A DNA stretch of 63,907 bases, counting the filler, from Octopus bimaculoides (taxonomy: Eukaryota): assembly GCF_001194135.2 (NCBI RefSeq). It is 5 parts of 4 records of this genome, joined end to end, with 100 filler letters (N's around TTAATTAATTAA, not from the genome) between each part and the next. Parts side by side here need not be neighbours in the genome. Positions count along the whole stretch, not along the records: positions 6,553 to 15,898 come from NC_068983.1; 4 more parts are not named here. One strand, given 5' to 3'. The position numbers were made by a program, and so were the translations under genes. The notes below the pieces were generated by a model, which was not told the DNA's origin, searched no databases, and saw only the letters and a list, made by a program, of their open reading frames with translations. Shown piece by piece: positions 6,553 through 26,793 of the stretch (position 1 is its first letter; every line of letters begins with the position of its first letter).

Positions 6553-6670
6553 TATATACATATATCTGTCTATCTATCTAACTATCTATCTATCTATCTA
6601 TCTATCTGTCTATCTATCTATCTATCTATCTATCGATCGATCGATCTATCTATTATGTATGCATTTGTAG

Positions 6671-6781
6671 TTGATCCATGTAGCAGTGATCCTTGTGAAA
6701 ATGGAGGAACGTGTACAAATAATAACACAGATTTCATATGCCAGTGTCCACCGGGATTTCAAGGAACTAACTGCGCCCTTG
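6671..6781 (+). CDS. EGF-like exon 1: xDPCSSDPCENGGTCTNNNTDFICQCPPGFQGTNCAL
   Basis: tttgtag| acceptor, |gtaggt donor, 111 nt, phase 1-1, six-Cys EGF spacing. Confidence 0.95.
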
Positions 6782-7433
6782 GTAGGTTCAGTTTTTGTGT
6801 CATCTTTTTAATATAACTAATTCAAAGTATTTCTGATGAATTTCCTTATAATATATTTGTTGTTCGTACAGGTTTGTAGAGGTAAGAGTAGTCTTCAAGT
6901 GAGCAAAACCTGTAGCCCGGTTTCAGTTCTTTGTTGAACATCACTGCAAATCATTGTATTCCTCTTCCTTTTACTTAACAAATAACTTGTACCTTGGTTT
7001 CATAAATAAAACCAATACACCATCCGTATTATATATAAAAATATCCATATATCGTATACGAATAGGTAGGTTAAATAATTAGTATAGGCAGCAGACAACC
7101 AATTTACATGTCAAAGAATTGGCACTATATGCCTGCAATTTTGGTACATCTATGGTGAATACTTTTAATTTTCAACAGTACAGGTATAATAGATATTTAC
7201 AGCAGAATGTTAGACTTTAACACTAAACAAATGACAATTCTATTTAAATCAAGCTGTTGATATAGAGAGGCCAAAAAGAAATAGAATATAGGAACAGAAT
7301 TTATCCATTATTCCTATTATCACATAATCAAGACCCAACGACAGTGTAGTGATATGAAACTATAAATTTCATACCATCTGCTTTACATTTACCTGAAATA
7401 AAGAAACATAGCTATGTTGGTGATGTCTAGATT

Positions 7434-7636
7434 GCGAGCTGGCAGAATTGTAGAGCATTGGAAAATGCTTAATAATGTTTCTGCGGCTCTTAACGTCCTC
7501 AGTTCAAATTCTGCTGAGATCAACTTTGCCTTTCATCCTTTTAGGGTCGATGAATTAAATACCAGTTGAACATTGGAGTCGATGTAATCGATTATACCCT
7601 ACTCCTAAAATTGCTGGCCTTGTACTGAAATTTGAA
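7434..7636 (+). mobile_element. SINE family B in EGF intron 1
   Basis: GCGAGCTGGCAGAAT...TTCATCCTTTTAGGGTCGATGAATTAAATACCAGTT. Confidence 0.8.
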
Positions 7637-7871
7637 AATTTCTATTAAGCGGCAAGAGACATTGTCGTACATTTACGGTCGCTGACTTAACGCTACTTCA
7701 TAGAATCAAATATTATTGTTTATAGAAAATAAAACAAAGGTTAATATAACAGTCTATATGTGTATTTTAAATGAATATTATAACCCGCCACCCGCTTGCT
7801 TGTTTCAGTACACAATCTCAAAATTAAAGCTTCAAAATTGTGAATGCTAAAGATTTGCAATCTATTTCCAG

Positions 7872-7982
7872 TTGAGCCATGCAGCAGCAGACCCTGTAAG
7901 AATAAGGGGATATGTTCGAACCACGGAACAAATTATACGTGCCAGTGCTTACCAGGATTTAGAGGCGATAATTGTGATATAG
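7872..7982 (+). CDS. EGF-like exon 2: VEPCSSRPCKNKGICSNHGTNYTCQCLPGFRGDNCDI
   Basis: tatttccag| acceptor, |gtagga donor, 111 nt, phase 1-1. Confidence 0.95.
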   Translation: MSHAAADPVRIRGYVRTTEQIIRASAYQDLEAIIVI

Positions 7983-8589
7983 GTAGGAAAACTATGTCAA
8001 CTTTGCTTGTTAACCACTAATAAATATAGAATTACAAATATATTTTACGATATTTTCCTGTTACATCTTTCAATGCTCTTAAAAACATTTTGCATAGGTA
8101 GATTTTCTAATGGACAAGACTTGGAATACGGCATGATATTAGCTTTTTAAAGAGCCAATCATACATATACTATCATCTATACAGTTCATTGAATTTTAAA
8201 AAAAAACAAGCAAACACACTGTTACCTTAATGGCCCATTTCAGCCGTATATCAATAGAATATACGGTATAAGCTGTGACTACATTGTATATTGGTTAGTG
8301 AATCGCTAGCTTATAGTAAGTACTGAAGTGCTTTGTTATGAATGCAGCTTTATAAATGAGACATTCCATCTGGAAATAACTTTCCTATAGTCTACTTTCA
8401 GAACACGAAAAACACTTTAATGCATTTATGATTCGGCAAATGATAGTGGTCTCATGCAGTCCAAGACAGACGCTTCTACAATTTCTCGTTGAACATTTCT
8501 GCGTAAATGATTTGTTTGTAGTGATCTCATGTGCTGCACACTAGCTCATTCCCTCCATCAAATCAGCGTAGCTTGAATATATGCATGTT

Positions 8590-8745
8590 GTGCCAGATGT
8601 CAGGTGTCGAAGTGATAACAGAGCAACGTGAGATGAAGCGTTTTGCTCAAGAACACAAAGCACCACTCGACCCAGATATTGAAATCACGATCTCGCGATC
8701 GTGAGTATAACACTCTGACCACTAGGCCATGCACTTTGACGATTC
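8590..8745 (-). mobile_element. Partial tRNA-headed SINE
   Basis: The reverse complement has a tRNA-like head and TGTGTTCTTGAGCAAAAC, like the element at 59973. Confidence 0.55.
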
Positions 8746-9280
8746 AACAAATAACATCTACATACCCCCCCCCCCATAATATATTGTGATCCATTCACTT
8801 GTAAGCACCTACTAATTTGGCAAAGAATAGCAGAAACAGGAAAAGGCTGCAATGAATTTGTTATACTATTTCATTAAGTCTCATATTTTGTGAGTTTATA
8901 TCTTGTAATATTGATAAAATAAATTCAGGTAATATGCTGTGGGTTGTATCAATTTCACTAACACAGCTATAGTGTGTATCTCCCCGGGGAGTTCTTGAAT
9001 TTTCCCCATCCCACTCCCTGTATACAGGCTTATACAGCAAACTCAAAAGTGCCGTCCATTCAAAGCGTCACCCGAGACAGATCTCCTTTGTCATCCACCT
9101 GGCTACGATAATAGCGAATTTAGCGTACCTTTCTACTGGAAATTAGTAATTAAATGCCAATGTATAAAAATTACAAAGAAATCTAACAAGTCTTCAGTTC
9201 TTTTTGAATCAGTTATAAATTACATAATTAAAGTAACCAATATATTTACCTATTATAAATATTATTTTTGTGGCATATAT

Positions 9281-9502
9281 AGCGGCGAGCTGACAGGATC
9301 GTTAACACGCTGGACGAAAATGCTTAGCGGTCTTTCGCCCGTTGCTACGTTCTGAGTTCGAATTACGCTGAGGTCGACTTTGCCTTTCATCCTTTCGAGG
9401 TCGATAAATTAAGTTCCAGTTACGCACTGGGATCGATGTAATCGTTTATCTCCCTCCCCCAAATTTCAGACCTTGTGCCTATAGTAGAAGGGATGATTAT
9501 TA

Positions 9503-9536
<34 letters not shown>
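9281..9536 (+). mobile_element. SINE family B with (ATT)n tail ending about 18 nt before the exon 3 acceptor
   Basis: Family B head and core, followed by an ATT repeat at about 9495-9536. Confidence 0.85.
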
Positions 9537-9537
<1 letters not shown>

Positions 9538-9554
9538 TTGTGGTATATTTCTAG

Positions 9555-9665
9555 TCGATCCATGTAGCAGTGGGCCATGTAATAATGGAGGAAACTGTTC
9601 AAATCAAGGATCGACATACCAATGCAACTGCCTTCCGGGATTTACAGGACAAGAATGCGAAATAG
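9555..9665 (+). CDS. EGF-like exon 3: [37 protein letters not shown]
   Basis: tatttctag| acceptor, |gttcgt donor, 111 nt, phase 1-1. Confidence 0.93.
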
Positions 9666-9707
9666 GTTCGTTCACAAACAAAACTTCTCAGTTTATATTA
9701 CAGCACA

Positions 9708-9925
9708 CAAGGGGTGCCGAAAATTTCCTGGCTTTGGGTAAAAGAAAATATAAATGGATCAGTTAATTATGATTTTATTCGACATATTTCTCCTCTCAGA
9801 TTCACGTACTTATCGCAGCGAACCTTCAGTTCTTTTAAGTCCTACAAACAAACGCGAAAGGTTGGGCTTTCAATCAGGCCTTCCACAATACCGTTAAAGC
9901 CACGAATTTTTCAGCACCCCCTCCT
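9708..9925. mobile_element. Mariner-type MITE
   Basis: Inverted termini GGGGTGCCGAAAATTTCCTGGCTTT and AAAGCCACGAATTTTTCAGCACCCC. Confidence 0.75.
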
Positions 9926-10840
9926 GTATATTAGAATAATACCATATACAAACCAAGATTTCCCAGAGTCCTGAAAGCCTAATTATAATAATTGATGATT
10001 AACGGAGATCATCAATATTGCGGTTAGAGGTTCTCATTGATATCAATATTCTCCCGTGAAAAAAAAATCAACAATGTAAAGAGATATACTCAATGGATTA
10101 TAGATACAAGTCAAAATGCCTTGTGTTTTTGCATGTCAAGTGATTATATTTGAAATTGTTTTGGTTCTTATTGTTAATGGATTCAATCAATGGATTGCGG
10201 CCAGACTGGAGTACCACCATAACCCTTTGTCTCTCCAAAACATTTTCATCAATTTGTCCGAAATGTTCATGTTTCTTTCAAACTTTAAGTCATCTTTTGT
10301 TTCATATGTTCCAAGTAATATAAAACTCTTCTTTTATAAGTCTCAAGTTACTTTTGTGGTTTTAAAGAAACTGGGAATGTGTATCACATATGATGCATGA
10401 ATGTCAGAAAAATATGCCTTGTGCATCACGTGTCATACACAATACAGGTTGAAGGATTTTGAACGATCATATCGACCCCAGTACTTTTTTCGGACCCAAG
10501 TACTTTTACATGCTAAGTCTTTTGCGGAATATCACTGGTGTTTTATACCGGGACACGCTCGCACATACACACACACACACACGTTTCTGTATTTTCCGTG
10601 TACCAAATACTACTGAAGGCTGTGGTAGAAGACATGAAGGTCTTGCTCTATGATATGAAACCCAGAATCATGAGTTCAGAACAAACACCTTAATTACACT
10701 ATTATGCCGGATTCAGATGCTAAAATCATGGCGGTACATTCAAAGTACAGTATTAGCCATTCAAACAAATAAGCGTCCTTGCATACACGCATACAGACAT
10801 ACGTATATACATACATTCACGCATACATGTATAAATAGCT

Positions 10841-11225
10841 TTTAGTCAAAAAATCGAACCATGTACTTATTGTTAAGTTTGGTACATATTCTATTCCATT
10901 GGTTACTTTGCCGAACCGCTATGTTACAGGGGCATGAACAAACCAATACCGGTCGGTAAGTGTTAGTCGGGGAATAACACAGAAGAAAAGATACACACAT
11001 ACACACAGACACACATGTATTTTTTCTGCGTTAATCTTCCACTAACGCCTACCAACCGGTATTGGTTTGTTTATACCCCTGTAGGCGGTTCAGCAAAGAG
11101 ACTAATAGAATAGAATAAGTACCAAACTTTAAAACAAGTACAGGCATTGATTTTCTCAACTAAAATCTTCAAGTCGGTGCTCCAGTATGACCACATTCCA
11201 ATGACTGAAACAAATAAAGGATATA
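10841..11225. mobile_element. Inverted pair of partial SINE family A copies
   Basis: About 10841-10966 (-) and about 11041-11225 (+) are mutual reverse complements over about 125 bp. Confidence 0.8.
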
Positions 11226-11268
11226 AGCTTTATTATTAAGTATCTGCGTATATATATGTATATTTCAG

Positions 11269-11379
11269 TTGATCCTTGCAGCAGTAATCCATGCAAAAAC
11301 GGAGGTGAATGCATGAAGCAAGGAAAGAACTTCAGCTGTGATTGTGAACCAGGATATAGAGGATATGATTGCTCAATAG
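11269..11379 (+). CDS. EGF-like exon 4: VDPCSSNPCKNGGECMKQGKNFSCDCEPGYRGYDCSI
   Basis: tatttcag| acceptor, |gtttga donor, 111 nt, phase 1-1. Confidence 0.93.
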
Positions 11380-12204
11380 GTTTGAAACTTTTTTTTATTT
11401 AAATTTAAATAATGATTATTTTTATAGGTTTGAGTAGATGAAAAACAATTAGGAAACTGAAAAAAAATATTAGTTTGCATACATATTCTTCCACGTTTAT
11501 TAACGAGTGAAACTTTTAAATGAAAAAATGTATCAACTGAGATTTAGTACAAAATATTGACTCCCTACTTTAATGCATTCTGGTTCCATCAATGGAAACA
11601 AAGCAGTCATTATATGTGGGCAGACTACTAAACTAACTACTGACGAAAAATCCACAGCATAAGCCTATTGTATTTATATAAATACTTATAGACATTCATA
11701 CTGGACTCTCTCTCTCTCTACCATCCTCCTTCTCTCCCTCTCCCCACTCTCTCTCCTTCTTTCTCTTTCTGTCTTAGCAACACAGCTTCAGAGAAAAAAA
11801 TCGCCACCAGACATATGGAGAAAATGTAATGGTGTTGGTGCTGGTGCCTTGGTTTGCTGAACAACCTACACGATGAATATTATTATTATAGAGGGCATGG
11901 TTTGTTCAGAGCTAGTCCCACTCCTTCGTAGTTATGAGGAAACACAATTTTAAAAGGGAAATATTTCCTTCGAACTGTGAAACTATTGAAGCTGTAAATA
12001 ATTGTTGAAAACACAAAGGTACATGCATTTTCTACACTAGAGTACTGTTCATATATCTAGTAAAAAATATAGCTGTTACATATATAAGCATGCTTGTCGG
12101 CATATGGAGAGGCCATCCCATTTACACATAAATATTTGACTTACTGAAAGATTACATCCACTAGAATCATTACGTGCTGATTCCTCCAAATATGTCTGCT
12201 ATAG

Positions 12205-12800
12205 TGGTTATAGATTTTTGTTTATCAAGCTGTGAGCATAAGTTTCTATCGAGGTAAACATCTAGTTATTTATAAATATATAAACGATCGGGATTAAGGT
12301 AAAATAAGAAAATACTTAAGTAGCACATATAAAGAACTACGATTTATCATTGATGTGACTATTAGTATAATGAGAGTTAACTTTCTAGACGTTGCCTTTG
12401 ATGTTAAGCTATATAAATATAAATCAGATAATAAACGAAATGAAAATATCATTTTCATCAGTAAATACTTCAATCCACTATCCACACATTAATCTCAACA
12501 ACTTAGTCAGCAGTATTAACGGAAGGACCTCCGACCCTCAGAAAAAGAACAATGGAATAATCCTTTAGAAGAAATTAAAGAACTCGCGAAGGAATAATTG
12601 GTTTACAGTAAACATTTTGCTTAATCCGAAATCTACACTGTGCTCAAGTAGCGAAACTAAAAACACAAAAATATTAACCGTTACATATTCTTCTTGAAAC
12701 TTTAAACCAAGTTTGCTAAGAAGTTCTTAAATTTGAATTGTAAATATTTTGCTACGATTCATAAACAATCCAAAATATTTAAGTGACAAAACTTAAGAAT
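12205..12800 (+). mobile_element. Decayed Penelope-like retroelement RT fragment
   Basis: Translates to FYRGKHLVIYK...KIRKYL...IMRVNFLDVAFDVKLYKYKSDNKRNENIIFISKYFNP...NNLVSSINGRTSD. This resembles the PLE pattern LYRDD...VNFLDVTFDL...Y.P..KPN...YI...SNHP...I.RRIS, with stops and frameshifts. Confidence 0.6.
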
Positions 12801-13545
12801 TAGTGACAATTGCCTCATCTTCATGGGGTACACCAATGTAGGCAAGTCAACCAACAGGCAACTTAAGCAACTTAATAAAGTCAAGAATGTAGACTCCACT
12901 TTGGTTGTGGACAGTTATGCGAAAGTTGCAGTCAATCAAAATAAGCGTGGACATCTTATGCAAAGCTGAATCTTACCAACAACAGTGTATATGTAATATA
13001 TATGTATATATATANNNNNNNNNNNNNNNNNNNNNNNNNNNNNNNNNNNNNNNNNNNNNNNNNNNNNNNNNNNNNNNNNNNNNNNNNNNNNNNNNNNNNN
13101 NNNNNNNNNNNNNNNNNNNNNNNNNNNNNNNNNNNNNNNNNNNNNNNNNNNNNNNNNNNNNNNNNNNNNNNNNNNNNNNNNNNNNNNNNNNNNNNNNNNN
13201 NNNNNNNNNNNNNNNNNNNNNNNNNNNNNNNNNNNNNNNNNNNNNNNNNNNNNNNNNNNNNNNNNNNNNNNNNNNNNNNNNNNNNNNNNNNNNNNNNNNN
13301 NNNNNNNNNNNNNNNNNNNNNNNNNNNNNNNNNNNNNNNNATATATATATATATATATATATATATACGTCGTTTATGCATCTACTTGAATGTGTTGTTT
13401 AGGGTTAGAAATGTAGGTGTGTATCTCTGAAGTATAACTTTTCTGAACAACCGATTTTTCTTCATTCAGTGCCTCTGTTTTCCAAAATGTAAAAAGAAAC
13501 TCCGTCAAATGTGAATTTTATCGAAATAATTTTTTTGTTTTTCAG

Positions 13546-13656
13546 TCGATCCATGTAGTAGTGATCCATGCGAAAATGATGGAAAATGTACAAACGCCGG
13601 CCACAATTTCACATGTAATTGTAATCAAGGTTTCAGAGGAACAGTTTGTTCTATAA
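13546..13656 (+). CDS. EGF-like exon 5: VDPCSSDPCENDGKCTNAGHNFTCNCNQGFRGTVCSI
   Basis: tttttcag| acceptor, |gtaaga donor, 111 nt, phase 1-1. Confidence 0.95.
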   Translation, partial: SIHVVVIHAKMMENVQTPATISHVIVIKVSEEQFVL

Positions 13657-13792
13657 GTAAGAAATAAGATTTAGTTTCCTGCTTGCTAACTTAGGTTCAC
13701 TTTGTGTTATCTCTTTAATCTTATTTTTTCCTATATAAAAGTATATTAACTTAATGTTTTTTATTTGTTTTTGCATTTTCTGTTTATTTCAG

Positions 13793-13903
13793 TTGATCCA
13801 TGTGGTATTAAACCGTGTCAAAATGGAGCGCTATGTTCAAACAAAGGATCGAACTTTACATGTCATTGTCTACCAGGGTTTGTAGGAGAAACATGCGAAA
13901 TAT
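13793..13903 (+). CDS. EGF-like exon 6: IDPCGIKPCQNGALCSNKGSNFTCHCLPGFVGETCEI
   Basis: tttatttcag| acceptor, |gtaagc donor, 111 nt, phase 1-1, preceded by a 136-nt intron. Confidence 0.95.
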
Positions 13904-14664
13904 GTAAGCGTCAAATTGCAGACCTTGTTTAACACGATTTTCGTTTGTTAAGGTTATATGTCTGTGCTCTCAGCACTGTTTGTATACCTGAGAGGATTTC
14001 TCTAATCCACGTTAAGTGAGATATAAAGATTACCGTTCGATATTAATACTGCTTCCGTCGCTAGCAGTTATCTTTTAATAAGCTTGCTGGTTATTTACGA
14101 CATAAGAGACTCAAAAGTCACAGTTATTCTACATATCGTTGGCAGTGAGATCTGGCTGGTATGCGCGAGAGGACGCCTGCCAATAAGGAAGCGTGATGTG
14201 ACAGTTCTGGCGCCCATGCCAGACGGTTTTTGTCTGCTGACCAATGCCTTGTGAATGAATTTGTTAGACGAAAATTATGTGACCTATTGTTCAACTAAAA
14301 GCCTTCAGGGCGGTGTCTTAACATGGCCGCAGTCCAGTGACTGAATCAAAGATGGAAGATAGAAGTTTGATATTTTTTAGTGTATTTAATCAACGTTTCT
14401 CTCTTCACTTCTTTTCTTCACTGTTAAAAGAAAAAAATTGGCCTTTAATTTTCATTTTCAACTAACTTCAGACTAACTAGTTTTAATATTTCTAGTTATG
14501 CCGTGCTGGATATTTCAGATCGAGAGTGAAATGATATTATCCGTGACTACTGAAAAATTTAGTAAAAGAATTATATGGAAATAATGTATGCTTTTTTCAT
14601 CACTTGATAATGATTTCTCGAAATAAGGAGGAAACAAAAGCGATTCTCTCCCCTTAAGTAGTAC

Positions 14665-14772
14665 TCTTCTTCCTTCTCTCTCTCTCTCTCTCTCTCTGCT
14701 CTCTCTCTCTGTCTCTTCTCTCTCCTCTCTTCTAATTCCTCTCTCCTTTCTCACCTCTCTCTTCTCTCTCTC

Positions 14773-14835
<63 letters not shown>
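14665..14835. repeat. (CT)n microsatellite
   Basis: Directly visible. Confidence 0.95.
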
Positions 14836-14966
14836 AGCAGTAGTAGTTCCCAGTCAGCCAACCATATATTTATTGATATATTTAAAATAATTATTCATAT
14901 GACAATTGCTTTATATTAATATGTTCTTTGATGTCGCAGTTCACTTTATTTTCTCATATTTTGCAG

Positions 14967-15077
14967 ACGATCCTTGCAGTAGTGATCCTTGCCAAAATGA
15001 AGGAATTTGCACAAATGAAAACTCAACCTTTAGCTGCTTGTGCATGCCTGGATATACGAAATCAGATTGTTCCGTTG
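14967..15077 (+). CDS. EGF-like exon 7: YDPCSSDPCQNEGICTNENSTFSCLCMPGYTKSDCSV
   Basis: ttttgcag| acceptor, |gtatga donor, 111 nt, phase 1-1. Contained in ORF 14906..15103. Confidence 0.95.
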
Positions 15078-15141
15078 GTATGAAAATTGTATATATAATT
15101 TAATTCATAAATACTTAGGCTAATTAGCGCATTGTGTAACC

Positions 15142-15458
15142 GGCACTCCACCGGTTACAACGGCAGGGGTTCCAGTTGATCCGATCAACAGAACAGCCTG
15201 CTCGTAAGATTAACATACCAATAGCTGAGCATTCCACATACACGAGTACCCTTAACGTAGTTCTCAGAGTGCTTCAGCAAGACACAGAACGTGTTAAGGC
15301 TAGCCCTTTGAATGCTAGGTACAACTCATTTTTGCCAACTGAATTGATTGGAGAAACGTGAAATAAAATGTCAGGCTCAGAGACACGATATGTCGACGGA
15401 AATCGAACTAAGACTTTACCATTGTAAGCTGAATACCTTAACCACTTAGCCACGCACT
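15142..15458 (-). mobile_element. SINE family C
   Basis: Reverse complement of the tail of 5649-6025, with a tRNA-like head at about 15400-15458. Confidence 0.8.
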
Positions 15459-15524
15459 TGTGATATTATCACTATTGTATCCCAGCACACGGAAAAGCAT
15501 AAGGACATACACATTGCATGTATG

Positions 15525-15583
<59 letters not shown>

Positions 15584-15590
15584 GTACATA

Positions 15591-15808
15591 TATATTAAAG
15601 TTCGATAAGGCTGGTTTATGGAATTACCTTAGGTTTCATGTCCAAAAAGTCTATCTAGCGAGTGGCCTCTCTTGCATACGGGGTAATTTCTTCCTCCATA
15701 TCTTAGAGAGGCCTTTAGCCAACATATTTTTGGATCTGATGATACGCCATAAAACTAAGCCCCCTTATGGACGTGAAACCTAAGGTAATCCCATAAGCCG
15801 GCCTTATC
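15591..15808. mobile_element. MITE with about 55-bp TIRs (long form)
   Basis: TATATTAAAGTTCGATAAGGCTGGTTTATGG...CCATAAGCCGGCCTTATC, the same TIR as 29796-29920. Confidence 0.8.
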
Positions 15809-15813
15809 CATCC

Positions 15814-15879
<66 letters not shown>

Positions 15880-16251
15880 ATATGTATATATATATATANN
15901 NNNNNNNNNNNNNNNNNNNNNNNNNNNNNNNNNNNNNNNNNNTTAATTAATTAANNNNNNNNNNNNNNNNNNNNNNNNNNNNNNNNNNNNNNNNNNNNGA
16001 GCGGGAAGTCGGCCTCGTTGAAAACCTTAGCCATATTCGTTTTAAAGAATATGGCTAGGAACGAGGAAGATATGTTTGAATTTTTGGAAATAAGGCTCTA
16101 AATAGAGCTATTTCCGATTTGAAAAATATATGTTCACGAAGTATTTTGTGTTATACACAACTTATACACAATTTTAAAACAAAATAGGTCTTTTAAGAGG
16201 TGAAAAATGCAACTTACATGGGAGCCGATGTGTCTACCGTCCGTCCATGAT

Positions 16252-16290
<39 letters not shown>

Positions 16291-16849
16291 GTAAAAATGG
16301 AGGTAGGGAGGCAGAGAGGAAGGGAGACATTAGTGCAAGTGAGAGAAAGGTAGATAGGCACAAGACAGACATCGGTATTTACTGACTGCTTGCAACCTTG
16401 TATACTTTGAAAATACGTGCATGCGTAAAAACAAACGAAAATTGACTATTGTATTAGTTTCATGTTGGATACGTAGTGTGGTATTTCAAACAAGAGAAAA
16501 TATAATGTTTCGCTGTTTGTATTTCTACTAATATATAATTATTACAATATTAAAGGAAATCCGTAGCCTTGGCTATCTTCTGTGCGTATTTGTCTCGCAG
16601 CAATATAAGATCTGGATTATGCTTCAAAGTATTTTCTGTCTTCCATCTTCCCTTTGTTTTCCTCTTAATATTCCTAATTCATTTTTCTTGATTCTCTCTC
16701 ACTTTCGCATCCATTCCATCATATGTACTGTATTCACTTTTCTTCATAAATATTCTTAAATATAGATAATGAAATAGTATTCTATGCTTTTCGATAATAC
16801 TGTCTCCAGTTTGAAGTTTGATCGTTACTTTATTCTTTTTTTCTTTCAG

Positions 16850-16894
16850 GATGAGAGAAACCAAATACTTACAACAAACTGCTGGCTCAATCAG
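16850..16894 (+). other. Candidate 45-nt exon
   Basis: Strong acceptor tattctttttttctttcag| and donor CAG|GTAAAT. Frame and gene assignment are unknown. Confidence 0.35.
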
Positions 16895-17325
16895 GTAAAT
16901 ATTCATTTACTTACATACACTCATAAACACTCATATACACATACACATATAACACTCATACACACATATACACATATACATATCCGTACCCACATGGACA
17001 CACACCTGAACTCATGTGCAAGTATACGCATACACACAAGCATATAAGCATTCACATACTTACACATACTAATATATATATTTACATAAAGAAGCATGCG
17101 TTTGAAGCCAGAAGACCTTGTATCGTAGTTTAATTCCCTGACATAGTTCGGAAGACACAGCATGCCACAATACTTAGGTTTTTATTGTAAAGATGAATTA
17201 CAAATAGCCATATACTGGTTGCTGTTACAGAAGAAGAGAATTGATAATTGGTATATTATTACACACATTCACATGCATATACATATATGCGTACATGGGT
17301 ACATACAGTCATATGTATGGATATG

Positions 17326-17392
<67 letters not shown>

Positions 17393-17849
17393 ATTGAATT
17401 TGGACGTCGCCGTGATAATGTTCGATTAACTTTTGATGTATGAATGGCCATTTAACTTGTGGTGTTACAAGTTGTGAACAAAGCGCTAATTGATTGCCAT
17501 ATCCATCTTTCTCTCTCTCGCCCTCTCCCTTCTCTCTCTCTCGCCCTCTCCCTTCTCTCTCTCTCTCTGTCTCTCTACCTCTTCCTCTTGCACAGTATCG
17601 TTCCTGACCTCACTTAGCACTGCCTCCATTCTCACCTGTTACTTCCACCACATAACTACCAATCTTTTCAATCTCCACCCATAAATTTACACCTCATCTC
17701 TTCTTATTCCAACTTCTGAGAACTACCCGATACACTTAGATAAGAATCCCCACCAATGGTTTAACCACCTGGTAAACTAGTTACACCTCATGCAGTTCCA
17801 TGATATTGTCTGCCTGATCATTGATTACAGATAAAAATATATCGAAATA

Positions 17850-17986
17850 CAGTAATTTCTCACTTTACGGAACCCGCTTTACAAGACTCCCGGGTTTACG
17901 AGTTGTTACTAGTTTTATTTCCTGTTTACGAGTTTTCGCTTTACAAACGTTCTCCAGGAATTAATTCGTATATCGAGGCATTACAG
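17850..17986. mobile_element. Tigger/pogo-like MITE
   Basis: TA-CAGTAATTTCTCACTTTACG at the left and CGTATATCGAGGCATTAC at the right form imperfect TIRs. Confidence 0.5.
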
Positions 17987-18526
17987 ATTCTGAGTTTTGA
18001 ACACATCATAAACCTAATGAAATATTGACTTTGTGCCTATAATATATTAAAGTTTCCTTGAATCATTTGTCTTTTAATCTATTATAACGGAGAATTAAAA
18101 AATTTTGTGGTATGGTTTTTAATATGATCTTAACAATCTTTGTAGTCCATATTCCTGCCAGTGGTCATTCTGAGTCATTTCTCTTCATTTTTCTTTTTGT
18201 TGTGTTAATTACCTTTGGCTATAAATGTTTTTTGTTGATGTTTGTATATATGTATTCTACCAGAGATATGTTAGCTCAACTATTAAGTTGATGACAGATA
18301 TTGGGACGTCAATATTGAAAAGTTTCCTTATTGACATAAGATTTGAAAATTCTTGCTTCTTCAGATTGCTGACCGTTCACATACTTAGATGTTTTAACAT
18401 GAACTTCTTCACACCTTTTTAAAGAAATAGCAATATATGAATAATGTATTTTGAATTGTTTAAATCCCTGGTCATACCACTAGCCATTCTGTATATATGA
18501 ATATACATAAATACGTACATACATGC

Positions 18527-18559
<33 letters not shown>

Positions 18560-18566
18560 CACACAT

Positions 18567-20612
18567 AGTTTCAATGTGGCTAGATTTTACTCTCTTTCCC
18601 ATTCATGGATGCTAGAAGTCCTTCAACTTGCTAAAGTTCTAGTGGGAATAGTCAAAGCCATAGCTGACCTGACTTCATCGTGGGCCATCATCTTGAAATT
18701 AAACACAAAGTGTGAATATATTATCACCGATAGAATACAATATCGCAAAGGCATATTCCAGGGAGACAGCCTCTCTGTGATGTTTATACTTTCTGTAAAC
18801 CCCTAGTCGTTCATGTTAAGGAAGTCGGAAGAGTATCTCACTGGTTCACAAGGAAACAGAAATACTAAAATTATACACTGTTTGTTTGTAGATGACTTAA
18901 AAATTTATGCAAAGAATATGCATGAGATGAAAAATATCCTTGACCTAGTTACAACTTTCTCAAAGGATGTAGGGTTGGAGTTTGGTCAGGATAAATGTTA
19001 TGTGGTTGTGCAAAGGGGAAAAACTATAAGCCAGACTAGTAGCAACACCGTCAAGGATTTGACTGTTTCCCTGTATCTGACGAGGTATGTTGCAGGTATA
19101 TATATCTTACAGTGACACCTGTAACAAAACACTTGTCACTAAAGAATATTACAGCCGAAAAAAGAAAATTTTAACCTCAGAACTCTCTGCATTCTAGAGA
19201 ACTGTGGCCCAAAAACTGTTTGCAGTGCCAGTACTCATACCAACATTTGGGCTGCTCGACTGGACGCTTTATGAGATCTGAGCCACCGATGTGAAAACCC
19301 GAAAAATACTAACATGCAAACATAATTTACAAATAAACAGTTATGTAGAACGCCTCAACCTAAAAAGTAAACAAGGCGGCAGAGGCTAAACATCGGTCCA
19401 AAATACCTTTAAACGTTGCATCATATCATTTTGTCAACATCTTTTAAACACCAAGCCTCGAAGTGCATCCCTTGACCAAGTTTGTATACATGAAGCGGAT
19501 AACATTATATGACTTGGAAGGCAGCTCCTTAAGCAACACTCTTTGATTACCTAGAATACATGCACGACTCTACCGCAATATATCATCAGATGAAAGGATG
19601 GGTCTATATGAGCAGAAGACTATACATCGATATGTTAGTAGAAAACTCAGTGATGATAGTAGCATCGATCATCAATGCAGTTTATCATGGACGAATAGTC
19701 GGATTATTTACCTCTCACTTTGAAGGGTATGTGTTTGCAATCCAGGAACAGGAAATATCAACTAAGTACAAAAGGGATAGAGATGCGGGAAAATCCGTAA
19801 AATGTGGCAACAGACTCTGTGGGGTTCACACTGAAGATAACATCCACATCATAAACAGTTATCAGAAAATGTCATCATGGTATTATCTACCGATGAGACA
19901 TGACGGTGTAGCTAGGACACACTATAATGAAATCCGCCGGAAGGATAATCCCTGAAGACATGGAAATAAAATCAACAATATGGTAAAGGCCATAGCCACT
20001 CACAATGAAAAAGAATACTAATGGAATGTACCTTAATAAAATGTAAGCACAACAGACCTGATATAATGATTTGGGAAATTAGTTGTGGAAATTGGCTGCC
20101 CAGCGGATGAGTGAAAAAGAGATCACCTATGCTGAACTATTGAGAAACCTACAGCTACTCTATCCAGATTATAAGTTCAGATTTATACCTGTAATTACTA
20201 GGGCCCTAGGATATGTAACACAGCCTAAATACCAATTTTGAGAAATTAGGCTGCTCAAAACCAGAAAATGAGAAAGGTAATTCGAAGGCTACAGATGCAA
20301 TCCATCACTGGAAATTGTAAAAATTTTTAAAACTTTCCAGAAGTTTATCATTTAAATATATATGAGCATGTCTTGATATGTAACTCTATGCATGAGAATA
20401 CATGCATAAAACATACAAATCTGCACATACATAAATGCATACATACATACATGCATGCATACAAGCATACATATATAAATACATATACACATATATACAA
20501 ACAAAAATACTCTGTTGTTGATGTTGAAATTCCAATGAAAGGACATTGGATCTAGGTTAAAAACCGGTTCTTTCTCTATTGGCAAGAAATCTTGCAATAA
20601 ACTGAATAATGA
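18567..20612 (+). mobile_element. 5'-truncated R4/Dong-clade (RLE-type) non-LTR retrotransposon, degenerate
   Basis: RT motifs SLSHSWMLEVL, KGIFQGDSLS, LFVDDLKIYAK, GLEFGQDKC; degenerate zinc knuckle RLCGVHTEDNIHII...RHDGVA; endonuclease KHNRPDIMI...YAELLRNLQLLYPDYKFRFIPVI. Multiple stops and frameshifts; flanked by (CATA)n. Confidence 0.88.
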
Positions 20613-23600
20613 CATACATATTATACATACATACATACATACATACATACATACATACATACATACATACANNNNNNNNNNNNNNNNNNNNNNNNNNNNN
20701 NNNNNNNNNNNNNNNNNNNNNNNNNCACACACATACACATACACAAACAAGCACTACACACACGAGCACTACATACAAACATATATATATATATACACAC
20801 ACATTCAAAAGAAAGTAAGAAAATGCAGACAGCATTTAATACAAATTTATTATCTGCAAAAATCAAACATGACCTCTTACAGCTGTTTCAGTTAAGCCTA
20901 ACACATTAAAAACTAATTATTAAAATCATTATCTTAGGCAAATTCTCTTCAGAGGGGTACAAAGGACGAAATACTATTAAGTTTTTAAGTGTCATATTTT
21001 AGAATCATCACTGTAGACTGAGTATTATTTTATAATTAATATTGCTACATCCCCGGGATTATAAGTTGTTTTAGTGGGTAATGGATAATATGTGAATATA
21101 ATTATGGTAATAATAGGAAAATGAACAGACTTTGAATACTAAATTACAGTGAAGAAGCATATCATATCAATGAGAAGATAAAAAATAAATACTTAGGTAA
21201 GTTGCTTATGGAGCTGAAAGAAACATATTTAAAATCATACAGACATATATTAACACCGGTCAAAAAGCATTCATCGTTTAATTCAGTGCATATACATACA
21301 TACATATACATATGCATATACATATATATACGTGAAGTGCAAAAAATTAGGGTTAAATGAAAAGGGCTCCAGAATTCAGAGAGTAGAGACTAAAGTCTGA
21401 AGAGAAAATATTTATTCCTGCTCCAGATACACAGTGGAATGAGGGGTGGGCATCTGATAAAACTATATTCATTCTAAATTGCTCAAATAGGGTTATATAT
21501 GTAAAGTAGAAAGAAAGCCAACCCGAACAAAATAATAATAATAATAATAACTTAAAAACTCAACCCCAAAACATTTTGTGGCAATTTGAGTTTTCGTGTA
21601 TTGAGTCTTGAGTTGCAGTTTTTCGGGCGAGAAATGTGTTGAAGGTGCATTGCACCAGCATTCCAAATCTGTCTATTTTCCCCGTAAATCTAAAAACAAC
21701 ATCCTAACCCTGTCACCGTCTTGCTAGAGATTGAACTTATAGAAAAATCAACGAAATTAATCTCTTACTATTGGTTATTCTTTATATTACAATTAAATAA
21801 TTATGAAAATGCAAAACATCTATTTTGTTTCTTTCTTCAATGAATATTTGCTTTTTACCAGGGTTCAACACCAAAAATCTGCTTTTGCACATCATGCATC
21901 ACTTACAACATATATATTTCCTTAGTGTGTATTTAATAAGGTCTCACAGGAGCTCAACTACTGAAAAATCTGAAACACCAGTTTAAGAAAACAGTTTTCA
22001 AATTTAGCGGTGAATTTCACTAGGACCCTACAACGTGTCTATTTTCCGTCACGTATACTTGCAATCCTCATATTACATTCCCTCCGTACTCTTAACAACC
22101 ACAAACATACCTGCACAACTCCTATTAACAAAATCCACTTTATACACTAATACTTTTCAACAATATACACATTCAATTTTAGTGTCACACAGGCACTTAC
22201 AAACACTTGCAACCATACTTCAGTTATAGTCCCAACAACTACAGTTACTGTCATATCTTTCAAGTAAGTATTGATTCATTTGTATATTATGTTGTCCCCG
22301 TTCGTTGACCAGTTACTTCGCTGAGACTAATCCAAGAGACGTTGTCTTGTCTCCTATGTGTGTAAAGCATTCTTTCGACTCCAGGTAATGTTCATTAATT
22401 TTGAAGGCAAACATGATCTACAGTTTCAATAAACGTCGAGTGGCAACTAGGAATGTGAAACAACTTTAGTTTTACTTCCTCTCCCCACACCATAGAGCAC
22501 TGGACTACAAAATATCTGCACCCAGTACGTTCACAAGCCCTTTATTCTTCAAATCCCAAACGATACCCTTATCTGACAGTTCCTCCTTCACTGTCTTCAG
22601 TCAGATGTGGACAAATGTAACCCTTTAAAAAAATTCAATTATGTGAAAACTAATTCATAGAATTCTGTCATTAGTATTTTCATCATCTATTAACACCTGC
22701 CTAACCTACCTTAATCAACATCAACTACATAAAATATCCCTCCTCCCGCCTCCTCCTCCTCTTCCTCCTTCTTTACATTTGTCGTCTTCGTGTCTACTCT
22801 TATTCTATAAAGTTTTCGGTCCTGTACTATGTTACCATTATGTTATTACCGTTTTGTATAAATGTACAGACACACACACACACACTCACAAACATGCAAA
22901 TATACGCCCGTACATCATATAAAAGTGCATTCACTTGTCTAGCTGAGATACGCCTAACAAATATGAGTGGGTGTGTGTGTGTATGTGTGCGTGTGGTGGG
23001 GTATATACTAGCATATATGTCTGCATTTGCCACTAGCTGTTCCTGAGGCCGTGTATATGTATAAACGTGTATGTGTCTATTAAAACTTCTGTATATATTT
23101 TGGAGTTTGCTTCGATGTCATGAATGAAGATAAGTGATATGCTTTCATTAAATCATTCGTTATATGATTTCAATTCCTTTCGTTATATGATTTACCATTC
23201 ATTCCACTATTGCTGTTTTTTCGTCTTGTGAAACGGATATGACATCTACTCTACTGCATATGTCAAGACTTCATAGCAAATAGATATGATAGCATGCTGT
23301 TCTACACCCCAGGGCTAGAGGCTTTTAAGGAAAGCGTATCCTAGTAGCCTAGCAATTAAATTCGCCTCAAGTGTTTTTCAGTTTGACATTCTGATATCTT
23401 ACGAATTGTTTGTGAGTGAGTCACCAAATTGTGATATGCAGTTCCACAATTCAAGCATTGGCAGATAAGAGAATTCGATTGCTCTTTCATTAATCATACA
23501 TGCACATACGGACCTATACACAGAAATATATGAAGCTAAAAAAAGTTTGGAAATATCAATATGTAAAAGCAATACACACACTCACACATACACACACACG

Positions 23601-23942
23601 CACACACACATTCAACTGAAATGGTTTCATGCCCAATGTTCTAGATATGTATATGTGTGTGAGCATGTTTATGTATATATGCACAAACACGCACACCTTA
23701 TATGTGCGCACAGACTCGCATAGAGGCAAATATATACACATGTAAGTGCACATATATGCTTAAGTGTTTGGATGTGTGTGTATGTACGTATAAATATTTT
23801 TCTTGTGCTCTCTCTCAATTCAATTTTGTGTTGTCATTTTCTTAGTATAAACTCATCCAAAATGCGTGACAACACGCATTCATACATATATATATTCCTA
23901 CATACATGCATACATACACAGTGCACACAGCTACATACATAC

Positions 23943-23986
<44 letters not shown>

Positions 23987-24270
23987 CTGTGTGTGTCTGT
24001 GTGTGTGCATTATAAATAATTAAACAAACAAACAAACATACATACATACATACATACATACACACATAAATGTATACATACATACATACATACATACATA
24101 CATACATAGATACATGTATTTCCTTATCTATAAAGGCCATTGGAAAGTACCCTTAGGTGGGAATTCAGGAATAATCCTTCACGCTTCTATATTTGACACT
24201 GCCATGAGTATCAAGTACATTCTGTTAGTAAAAAGTAGTTATACTTTAAAATTCCTTTATCGTAATCAAG

Positions 24271-24309
<39 letters not shown>

Positions 24310-24568
24310 TGTGTGTGTGATAGTGTGTGCGTTTGCATGTGTAAGACTACGTGTGTTTCGACATGTTTTTGCCTAAATATTCGTCCTATATTGCTCGCAC
24401 TAGAAAGTTTATGGTAATTAAATCTGAATTATGAGCACTTCCTTTGGAACCTGTTTCCATATTTAACACAGCTATTGATGGATAGGAAATAGAACGACTA
24501 ACATTGCCGTTTCATTATCCCATCATCTGTAGACAGCTTACCTTTTTTGTATAATGGTGTGTATTTAA

Positions 24569-24790
24569 CCCATTAAGTCCCACCGTCCTATAAATAGGAC
24601 ACTAAATGAGAACATTAAATAAGCTATATCACATTGTCTCAGTGTCCTATTTATAGGACACCGAGTATTTCCATTTCTACTTGAAGTAATGGAGTTTTAA
24701 TAATTATGTTTTCATTTTAACCTATTTTCAATCATCTGTAAAAATTTAAAAGTAATATTCAGAAATGTAAGTACTGTGGGACTTAGTAGG
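24569..24790. mobile_element. piggyBac-type MITE
   Basis: TTAA at 24565-24568 and 24791-24794. Termini CCCATTAAGTCCCAC and GTGGGACTTAGTAGG, plus an internal inverted repeat GTCCTATAAATAGGACACT / AGTGTCCTATTTATAGGAC. Confidence 0.8.
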
Positions 24791-25267
24791 TTAAATCTAC
24801 ATTTGAAGAGATACGTGTTTAAAATACACATATTTTAATTGCATGCAAATAGTGAGACGAATGACAATGTCCGATCAACTCTTACATCTTTCAAGTGACA
24901 CCATATCTTTAATTTGATGCGAACTACACTAAGCACTCTCACATACAATCATAAATCATATTCAGTGTCTCGTGAGAATTTGGACATATTGCATTCCTTC
25001 CGCTCTCACCGGCTTTATATTCTGTCTTATGTTGTTGTAGCTACCATACTGATGCATGCAAACTGGATTGCATAAAAGTCCCAAAGTTGCAATTCATTTT
25101 TCATTTATACATAGCGGTATGCATTTTTAGAGATTGTGAAGCTATTAAACCTGGCATTGTCTCCGTGTGTTCTTTATAATTATTGGAGATGAGTTTGAAA
25201 ATAGGAACTTATGATCCATGAAACGTTCTGGAATAAGTTAAGTAAATAAATCAGACGTAAGAAATAA

Positions 25268-25286
25268 ATAACTCACTCTCTCTGAA

Positions 25287-25381
<95 letters not shown>

Positions 25382-25400
25382 TGTGTGTCTGTGTGTGTGT
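25268..25400. repeat. Long (GT)n microsatellite
   Basis: Directly visible. One of dozens of (GT)n, (TA)n, (CATA)n and (TATC)n tracts in the window. Confidence 0.97.
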
Positions 25401-26452
25401 CTGTGTTGGTGTCTGTGTATAATAACAATAATTCTAGGATGGAATTTATAAATATATATAGCATCGCTACGCGCGTTTCCACATCTCAAGTGATTTTCCC
25501 ATCAGAGTTGGTATAGTTCGACTTATTCGTGGATATCATTGTATAACCATGATGCAACCCTGGAAATCTGACTTACTAGTCAGTATCTTTAAAGATATAT
25601 ATACATACATATACGAATTTATGTATATATATATGTGTGTGTGTATGTGTGTGTGTGTGAGTGTGTGCATATATATATGTATGTATGTACATATGTATGC
25701 ACATATATGTATGTATGCATGTACATATGTGTGTGTACATATATTACAAATATTACTGCGAAGTATATATTTGGTTTTCAGTTGCATGATTATTTTTTCC
25801 TTCTTTATTTCTTTACATTTATCGAGCAACATTTTTCTTATTTGCATCATTGAACACATGATAAGTCAACAGCAGAAATGTTACAATTACTCATATACAG
25901 TAGGGAACTATTTCACTTGCCATTTTCTTTTACTTTCTAATAGGTTGTTTGATCAGCCCATCACTACTACAATCACCTCAAACCAAACTGCCGTGAACCA
26001 ACAGAACAGCCCTATCCATTATATTTCTTTACTTACATTTCTCTTTTCGTTCTCTTCATTTTTTCCTATATACCATAATTCCTAAAGTGACATCCTATTA
26101 ACTAAGATACTTTTGCATTTGAATTCGCATTCCTCCCTTCCCTGGTATTGACCCGACTATTAGTAATTACCCCTTCCTTCATTATTACTTTTGTTGATGC
26201 CTGTGTATTAACATAAATACGTGAGCTGCTCCTTTGGCCTTGGTCATTTCTCTTTCGCACGAATATATTCAGGGTTTTCAAATTGAAGTTATTAATGTTT
26301 CATGTTTCATGTCATATTTTTGCTTCTTTGTTATGTATAATTAGTGCCTAAATGTATGCGCCTGTTTTCACAACATGCAATACAGCATTTGGCAGTGACG
26401 AATATTTGAAGCCGCTTTTAACAACTATCTTCAAACTGTAATGTGAATATGT

Positions 26453-26793
26453 AGGTGCAGGCAAGGTTGGGTCATAAAACATTTCCTTTCTAACTTCATG
26501 GTTTCGGGTTCAGCCCCACATCGTGGCACGTTGGGAATGTGTTCTGAAATACGGTAGAGGAAAAATAAAAGACGTGATGTATTTGTATGTATACGTACGT
26601 ATATATGTGTTAGTGGTTGTCCCGCACCATAACTTGAAAACCATCTTTGGTTTATTTACGCCACTGTAACTTCGTTGCTCGGCAAAATAGACTGATTGGA
26701 TAAGTACCTGATTTTAAAATAACGTTTTCAAGTAAACCCATCAAGGTATTAACGCAGCATAATCGCAGACCAGTTACTGAAATAAGTAAAAGA
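26453..26793 (+). mobile_element. Diverged SINE family A
   Basis: Head GGTGCAGGC..., body GGTTTATTTACGCCACTGTAACTT, tail ACTGAAATAAGTAAAAGA. Confidence 0.6.

Follow-up and report, generated by a model that had tools for sequence, protein, structure and literature searches.

The question raised by this locus is whether a run of seven short exons, each encoding one epidermal growth factor (EGF) module, belongs to a gene that has already been described, and how such a run came about. The DNA analysed (hereafter the window) is a stretch of 63,907 nucleotides (nt), filler included, composed of parts of the Octopus bimaculoides assembly GCF_001194135.2. The exons lie in the part derived from NC_068983.1 (positions 6,553 to 15,898 of the window, hereafter the piece). 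An earlier note, made from the sequence alone, had described them as a hidden array and had ascribed it to a lineage-specific tandem exon expansion in an extracellular protein. In brief, the piece comes from the interior of a larger gene, probably a divergent and unannotated relative of the octopod EGF-array structural proteins. By sequence comparison, the favoured candidate would be the family with the architecture VWA-EGF(n)-VWD/C8/TIL-PAN, octovafibrin-like proteins appearing less likely.

Borders, phase and module type of the EGF exons

Exons were located by a six-frame scan for the EGF cysteine pattern, and each match was extended to 111 nt. Seven matches were obtained in the piece, every one on the plus strand (Table 1). 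All seven exons had been proposed in the earlier note as AG/GT-bounded and encoding 37-residue EGF modules that start with xDPC or xEPC, and all were verified: a pyrimidine tract and AG directly precede each exon, GT directly follows it, and all 14 splice dinucleotides are intact. Each exon opens with codon positions 2 and 3 and closes with position 1 of the next codon (phase 1-1). The predicted join of the seven exons reproduced the 777 stop-free nt reported before, i.e., 7 × 37 residues or 259 amino acids (aa). Introns 1 to 6 measured 1090, 1572, 1603, 2166 (326 N counted), 136, and 1063 nt, respectively, and the description of invariant exon length and phase with introns of 136 nt to more than 2 kb was accurate (measured range 136–2166 nt, the largest including the 326 N). 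The modules start with VDPC, VEPC, IDPC or YDPC and share the spacing C-x4-C-x5-C-x8-C-x-C-x8-C, and none of the 42 cysteines is missing.

A profile built from the seven repeats was searched in six frames against all stop-free fragments of both strands and gave E-values of 1e-20 to 1e-22 at the seven exons only. The next best match on either strand had an E-value of just 1.6, and no further EGF-like sequence, intact or decayed, was recovered by this profile. Since nothing beyond the seven exons scored better than this, the readable sequence contains no decayed pseudo-exons. The seven exons are confirmed as real, far beyond chance. That they are largely missed by the open reading frame (ORF) track is true but trivial: at a threshold of 60 aa, exon 7 is the only exon inside a listed ORF, and the exons are missing from the track because eukaryotic exons are short.

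The joined peptide matched Pfam EGF (PF00008) in seven stretches (E = 1.3e-43) and hEGF (PF12661) at 2.6e-33, and the PROSITE EGF_2 pattern was present in 7/7 repeats. The PROSITE calcium-binding EGF (cbEGF) pattern (PS01187; leader [DEQN]-x-[DEQN](2)-C; family PF07645) was found in 0/7 repeats, so the absence of a calcium-binding leader, also remarked upon earlier, holds; the pattern fails because the residue preceding the first cysteine is proline in every repeat. The Asx-hydroxylation half-site PS00010 (C3-x-[DN]-x4-[FY]-x-C4) is present in six of the seven repeats, repeat 4 having a lysine, and this half-site alone makes no calcium site. An assignment of the modules as non-calcium-binding Notch/fibropellin-type EGF repeats, one per exon, of an extracellular protein is supported. 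A symmetric class 1-1 exon encoding one EGF module represents the classic shuffled-module class (Patthy; PMC3927616), as the earlier note had stated. All seven exons are of this class and do not differ from the class 1-1 EGF exons that metazoan mosaic proteins have, the array being a textbook instance whose exon design raises no new evolutionary question by itself.

The O-glucosylation motif C1-x-S-x-P-C2 occurs in six of the seven repeats, actual glucosylation being a prediction from sequence. C-X-S-X-(P/A)-C is the motif glucosylated by POGLUT1/Rumi (PMC3675014, PMC7803782), a modification that stabilises EGF repeats and helps their trafficking (PMC7803782); serine O-glucosylation at these sites would stabilise most of the modules. 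The O-fucose consensus C2-x4-T-C3 is present in repeat 1. Exactly one N-x-S/T sequon was found per repeat, within peptide positions 14–23 and, in four repeats, at the same site right before C4. Overall, the 259-aa peptide is acidic (27 D+E versus 13 K+R), and Cys, Gly, Asn, and Ser are abundant.

An AlphaFold (AF2) model of the exon 1 module (predicted local distance difference test (pLDDT) 86.8; strands 13–17 and 20–24) had its best PDB fold matches in 5ky7_B and 5l0v_B, i.e., EGF substrates bound to POFUT1/POGLUT1 (template modelling (TM) score 0.92–0.94, root-mean-square deviation 0.6–0.7 Å, identity 56–57%), and also matched the fold of the glucosylated substrate EGF 5f84_B. The nearest solved structures by sequence were EGF runs of DLL1 and Notch1, with E-values to 1.4e-41. 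Compared with the POGLUT1/POFUT1 substrate EGFs of Notch and Crumbs (PDB 5l0v, 5ky7), the array thus shares the O-glucose motif (6/7), the O-fucose motif of repeat 1, and the modelled fold; it differs in having no cbEGF modules and no receptor domains within the piece.

Table 1. Exons of the EGF array and two landmarks between them, in window positions
Feature	Position	Strand	Properties
EGF exon 1	6671-6781	+	111 nt, phase 1-1; peptide xDPCSSDPCENGGTCTNNNTDFICQCPPGFQGTNCAL; carries O-glucose and O-fucose consensus
EGF exon 2	7872-7982	+	111 nt, phase 1-1; peptide VEPCSSRPCKNKGICSNHGTNYTCQCLPGFRGDNCDI
EGF exon 3	9555-9665	+	111 nt, phase 1-1; also fits the O-GlcNAc (EOGT) motif C5-x-x-G-F-T-G
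EGF exon 4	11269-11379	+	111 nt, phase 1-1; peptide VDPCSSNPCKNGGECMKQGKNFSCDCEPGYRGYDCSI; of the repeats, nearest to the octopod family consensus (76%)
Assembly gap (326 N)	13015-13340	.	within intron 4; TA-rich microsatellite on either flank
EGF exon 5	13546-13656	+	111 nt, phase 1-1; peptide VDPCSSDPCENDGKCTNAGHNFTCNCNQGFRGTVCSI
Intron 5	13657-13792	+	136 nt; makes exons 5 and 6 a close pair
EGF exon 6	13793-13903	+	111 nt, phase 1-1; peptide IDPCGIKPCQNGALCSNKGSNFTCHCLPGFVGETCEI; sole repeat without O-glucose motif
EGF exon 7	14967-15077	+	111 nt, phase 1-1; peptide YDPCSSDPCQNEGICTNENSTFSCLCMPGYTKSDCSV; phase-1 end requires a downstream exon

Family placement and competing explanations

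Protein searches, proposed in the earlier note as a check, were performed with the joined 259-aa peptide as well as with its 4× and 8× concatenations and covered protein lengths of 160–452 and 842–3600 aa. The best full-length match was O. sinensis XP_036356789.1 (“neurogenic locus notch homolog protein 1 isoform X6”) with 60% identity over all 259 aa. This protein comprises a signal peptide, VWA, 21 EGF repeats of 37 aa of the VDPCSSNPC type, VWD, and PAN, and O. bimaculoides XP_014774721.2 (“zonadhesin”) falls into the same cluster. An Argonauta hians fragment named “adhesive plaque matrix protein 2-like” showed 58% identity to the window peptide. The architecture common to these octopod relatives is a signal peptide and VWA followed by a long run of 37-aa VDPCSSNPC EGF modules and by VWD/C8/TIL-like and PAN regions. 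In addition, a profile of the seven exon translations matched 27,091 EGF proteins, for the best 150 of which identity to the window peptide was assessed. Outside the cephalopods, full-length identity did not exceed 47%, these 150 matches included. No repeat-for-repeat bilaterian orthologue was present among the proteins compared, and the earlier judgement that the array is not identifiable as an orthologue is supported.

Gene structure and leader motif point in the same direction as the full-length match. Of the EGF modules at the “zonadhesin” locus of O. bimaculoides, 26 in a row are each encoded on a 111-nt phase-1 AG/GT exon, as are at least 17 in Argonauta, and the VDPCSSxPC leader is nearly confined to these octopod proteins (6048 repeats examined). 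The features shared with the octopod VWA-EGF(n)-VWD/C8/TIL-PAN proteins are 37-aa VDPCSSxPC non-calcium modules on 111-nt phase-1 exons and an O-glucose motif in nearly all repeats. The differences lie in the repeats themselves: those of the octopod family are homogenised (84–97%) as exon-plus-intron units, often in alternating pairs, whereas the window repeats are divergent and their introns unrelated, and the N-x-S/T sequon carried by each window repeat is found in 0/21 repeats of the O. sinensis protein.

Several observations weigh against this placement. No protein with at least 90% identity to the window peptide was found within either of the two length ranges searched, and there was no exact match on record for four ORFs of the window. 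The piece stops 118 nt 5′ of exon 1 and 821 nt 3′ of exon 7, by which VWA, VWD, lectin, signal peptide, and transmembrane regions are all out of view. Finally, single-repeat identity to the octopod family is 57–76%, compared with 59–65% for the best of 6048 repeats picked in other phyla. As single-repeat identities barely separate the groups, the family assignment relies on the leader motif and on the collinear identity of 60%, against a maximum of 47% elsewhere. The piece as such was absent from the three loci compared (two of O. bimaculoides and one of Argonauta), where matches were restricted to dispersed repeats or exons.

It is unlikely that the exons instead come from octovafibrin, the Octopus egg-tether fibre protein in which 29 EGF modules stand between two C-type lectin domains, or from a close paralogue of it. 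Octovafibrin (O. bimaculoides XP_014771937.1) consists of 29 tandem 37-residue non-calcium EGF repeats and is load-bearing in the egg tether, its stiffness and toughness deriving from disulfides and hidden beta-sheet length (PMC10336842). Its module, likewise from an Octopus genome and without any calcium-binding copies, agrees with that of the window in length (37 residues), in cysteine spacing (positions 5/10/16/25/27/36 = 5,6,9,2,9), and in D/N at position 3 and F/Y at position 23. On the other hand, none of 20 tested octovafibrin peptides from tandem mass spectrometry (Table S1 of that study) was present in the window peptide, the comparison being made via published peptides only. These peptides have other linkers, e.g., C-TFDY-C and CSDGPK, and no lectin-bearing protein was among the top 120 matches of a search whose range of protein lengths took in about 1300 aa, in which the VWA family ranked first. 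Octovafibrin thus differs in its C-type lectin flanks and in linkers and loops that look more varied. It is the strongest functional precedent for a mechanical role of the array. The sea-urchin fibropellins are similar in that their extracellular EGF arrays, with at most about 21 repeats and no signalling role, form matrix fibres (PMC10336842); they belong to another phylum, reach at most about 40–47% identity with no orthology, and have CUB/C1s-like and avidin-like ends that are unseen in the piece.

It is very unlikely that the window array arose through recent tandem amplification of a single exon within one lineage. Such an amplification would account for the invariant length and phase and for the xDPCSSxPC start common to all copies, and it has occurred in related genes: the Argonauta array consists of two alternating exon types (A/B pairs), 84–97% identical within type, and the “zonadhesin” units of O. 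bimaculoides are 82–92% identical over 0.8–1.2 kb, introns included. Judged by these sequence identities, the relatives’ arrays are young and recently amplified, unlike that of the window. Here, pairwise identity between copies is 52–68% at the nucleotide and 44–61% at the amino acid level, similarity ends at the exon borders, and the introns have just a short interspersed nuclear element (SINE) in common. This low identity together with the unrelated introns indicates that the duplications in the window are ancient. Identity by codon position 1/2/3 is 0.71/0.72/0.44, with the third position near saturation, which is a signature of purifying selection. No one-to-one pairing of window repeats with Argonauta repeats was found, and the lineage-specificity of the window expansion cannot be dated from the piece. 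Of the expansion described in the earlier note, the extracellular EGF array stands; it is not an isolated novelty, as arrays of the same exon type occur in annotated genes of O. bimaculoides, O. sinensis, and Argonauta hians. The age of the window copies makes “lineage-specific tandem expansion” a better description of the relatives than of the piece.

The Argonauta hians array lies at positions 10001–26491 of the compared locus, which was taken from BAAFZT010000052.1, and shows strictly alternating A/B exon types up to the end of the region examined. The gene upstream of it ends in VWD/TIL/PAN, which suggests tandem paralogues. Introns within the Argonauta exon pairs are 123–145 nt long (e.g., 17137–17266 of this locus), a size class into which intron 5 of the window also falls. 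Alignment of intron 5 with these introns gave z-scores of about 3–4, in part from common splice signals, and an ancestral “pair unit” shared with Argonauta is possible, if unproven.

That the array is dead or artefactual, i.e., a pseudogene remnant or the result of mis-scaffolding across the N gap, is highly improbable. No annotated product was found, and (TATC)n tracts at both piece ends plus a gap are what a small unplaced scaffold would have. Against this stand the lack of stops, the complete sets of cysteines and splice sites (42/42 and 14/14), the purifying selection visible at codon positions, and the same exon type and strand on either side of a gap with TA repeat at both edges. The gap begins 1635 nt past the exon 4 donor and ends 205 nt ahead of the exon 5 acceptor; as it interrupts a (TA)n tract of intron 4, it is spanned by no reading frame. 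Both neighbouring exons, 4 and 5, are whole phase 1-1 units and therefore join in frame at any true gap length, and their common type and strand argue for true adjacency. TA-rich gap edges are typical of a short-read assembly break. The length of intron 4 is an estimate owing to the gap, in which a further 111-nt exon may hide. Moreover, the phase-1 start of exon 1 and the phase-1 end of exon 7 require that the gene runs on past both piece ends. The earlier count of seven exons is correct for what can be read; with the piece edges and the gap, seven modules are a minimum.

Least credible of all is a conserved bilaterian EGF receptor or ligand (Notch, Delta/Jagged, Crumbs, SNED1 or Eyes shut). 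Such proteins dominate the match lists and the PDB matches. Against this reading, they reach at most 47% identity with no collinear repeat-for-repeat match, Notch and Crumbs interleave cbEGF modules (0/7 here), and the uniform 37-aa modules and the leader motif are typical of octopod arrays.

Possible exon skipping and function, and annotation

Once spliced, the exons would form a rod of at least seven three-disulfide non-calcium hEGF modules in a secreted, glycosylated extracellular protein. Stapled by its disulfides, the array would serve as a spacer, or as a stalk that can extend, between terminal domains for assembly or adhesion. The earlier note had pointed out that any subset of exons can be skipped in frame, and indeed all 127 of the 127 non-empty subsets were stop-free, with Val, Ile, Phe, Asp, Asn or Tyr as junction residues. 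RefSeq isoforms X6, X7, and X8 of the O. sinensis protein comprise 1535, 1498, and 1424 aa with 21, 20, and 18 repeats, respectively, and the crumbs-like isoform models of Branchiostoma LOC144918448 (2425, 2388, 2351, and 2314 aa) differ in steps of exactly 37 aa; these isoforms are computed models, and read mapping is ambiguous in near-identical repeats. Annotated genes with EGF arrays often show such series of isoforms with different numbers of repeats. The sea-urchin fibropellin gene has one repeat per exon and isoforms that differ in repeat number. By analogy, the O. sinensis and amphioxus models lend some support to exon skipping at the window locus.

A more specific proposal is tentative, and we regard it as possible rather than probable: the gene might encode a fibre or adhesive protein of octopus that has so far escaped annotation and that is a diverged sister either of octovafibrin or of the zonadhesin-like VWA-EGF-VWD genes. 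In such a protein, skipping of exons in frame would set how long or how extensible the stalk is, and each module would offer an N-glycan sequon plus O-glucose. Octopus tandem non-calcium EGF proteins are of biomaterials interest because octovafibrin is a load-bearing egg-tether fibre protein, and a diverged paralogue with intact modules is for the same reason a reasonable candidate for expression and proteomic work.

With regard to novelty, three octopods already have annotated genes of nearly the same design, and the hEGF domain is standard; a diverged, apparently unannotated member whose repeats are not homogenised is a modest addition. The main importance lies in annotation, as at least seven well-formed coding exons in a row were left without a protein model in the searches made. 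Related arrays are visibly mis-annotated as well. The deposited Argonauta annotation splits the array into a 354-aa partial protein and several 74-aa two-exon “genes,” and O. bimaculoides XP_014774721.1, formerly of 2657 aa, is in a later release a protein of 2175 aa plus a separate “matrilin-2-like” protein of 442 aa. The O. bimaculoides “zonadhesin” locus (CM046603.1:45964004-46061648) contains 18,758 N. Names in use for the octopod VWA-EGF family include zonadhesin, Notch 1, fibropellin-1, matrilin-2-like, and VWA2. A published upregulation of ZAN in the O. maya oviducal gland (PMC8976471) could not be linked to these genes and was left aside.

Repeats in the introns and at the piece ends

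The SINE-like dispersed repeat is present in two window copies (7413–7638 and 9274–9501) that are 78% identical to each other, and dozens of copies at 73–87% were found in two O. bimaculoides loci. Three more dispersed repeat families (15142–15457, 8507–8737, and 9713–9931) have multiple O. bimaculoides copies at 73–81%. None of the window intron repeats was found in the Argonauta locus, where exons alone match. This distribution of the repeats marks the genome as one of the Octopus lineage. Scans of the piece for tRNA genes (ARAGORN) and against Rfam, the SINE-like copies included, recognised nothing.

A (TATC)n microsatellite occupies both piece ends (6553–6660 and 15805–15880), with further simple-repeat tracts at 14660–14835, 15528–15575, and 9499–9537; long tracts of (CT)n, (CA)n, and (ATT)n occur in the introns. 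The piece resembles a short scaffold with breaks at microsatellites. Intron 3 contains a nested palindrome (10850–11154) with outer arms of 70 nt (81% complementary) and inner arms of 64 nt (83%), which looks like a foldback insertion or one of the miniature inverted-repeat transposable element (MITE) type. A pair of 44-nt inverted repeats (15604–15647 and 15765–15808; 89% complementary, 117 nt apart), adjoining the terminal (TATC)n, is possibly a small MITE.

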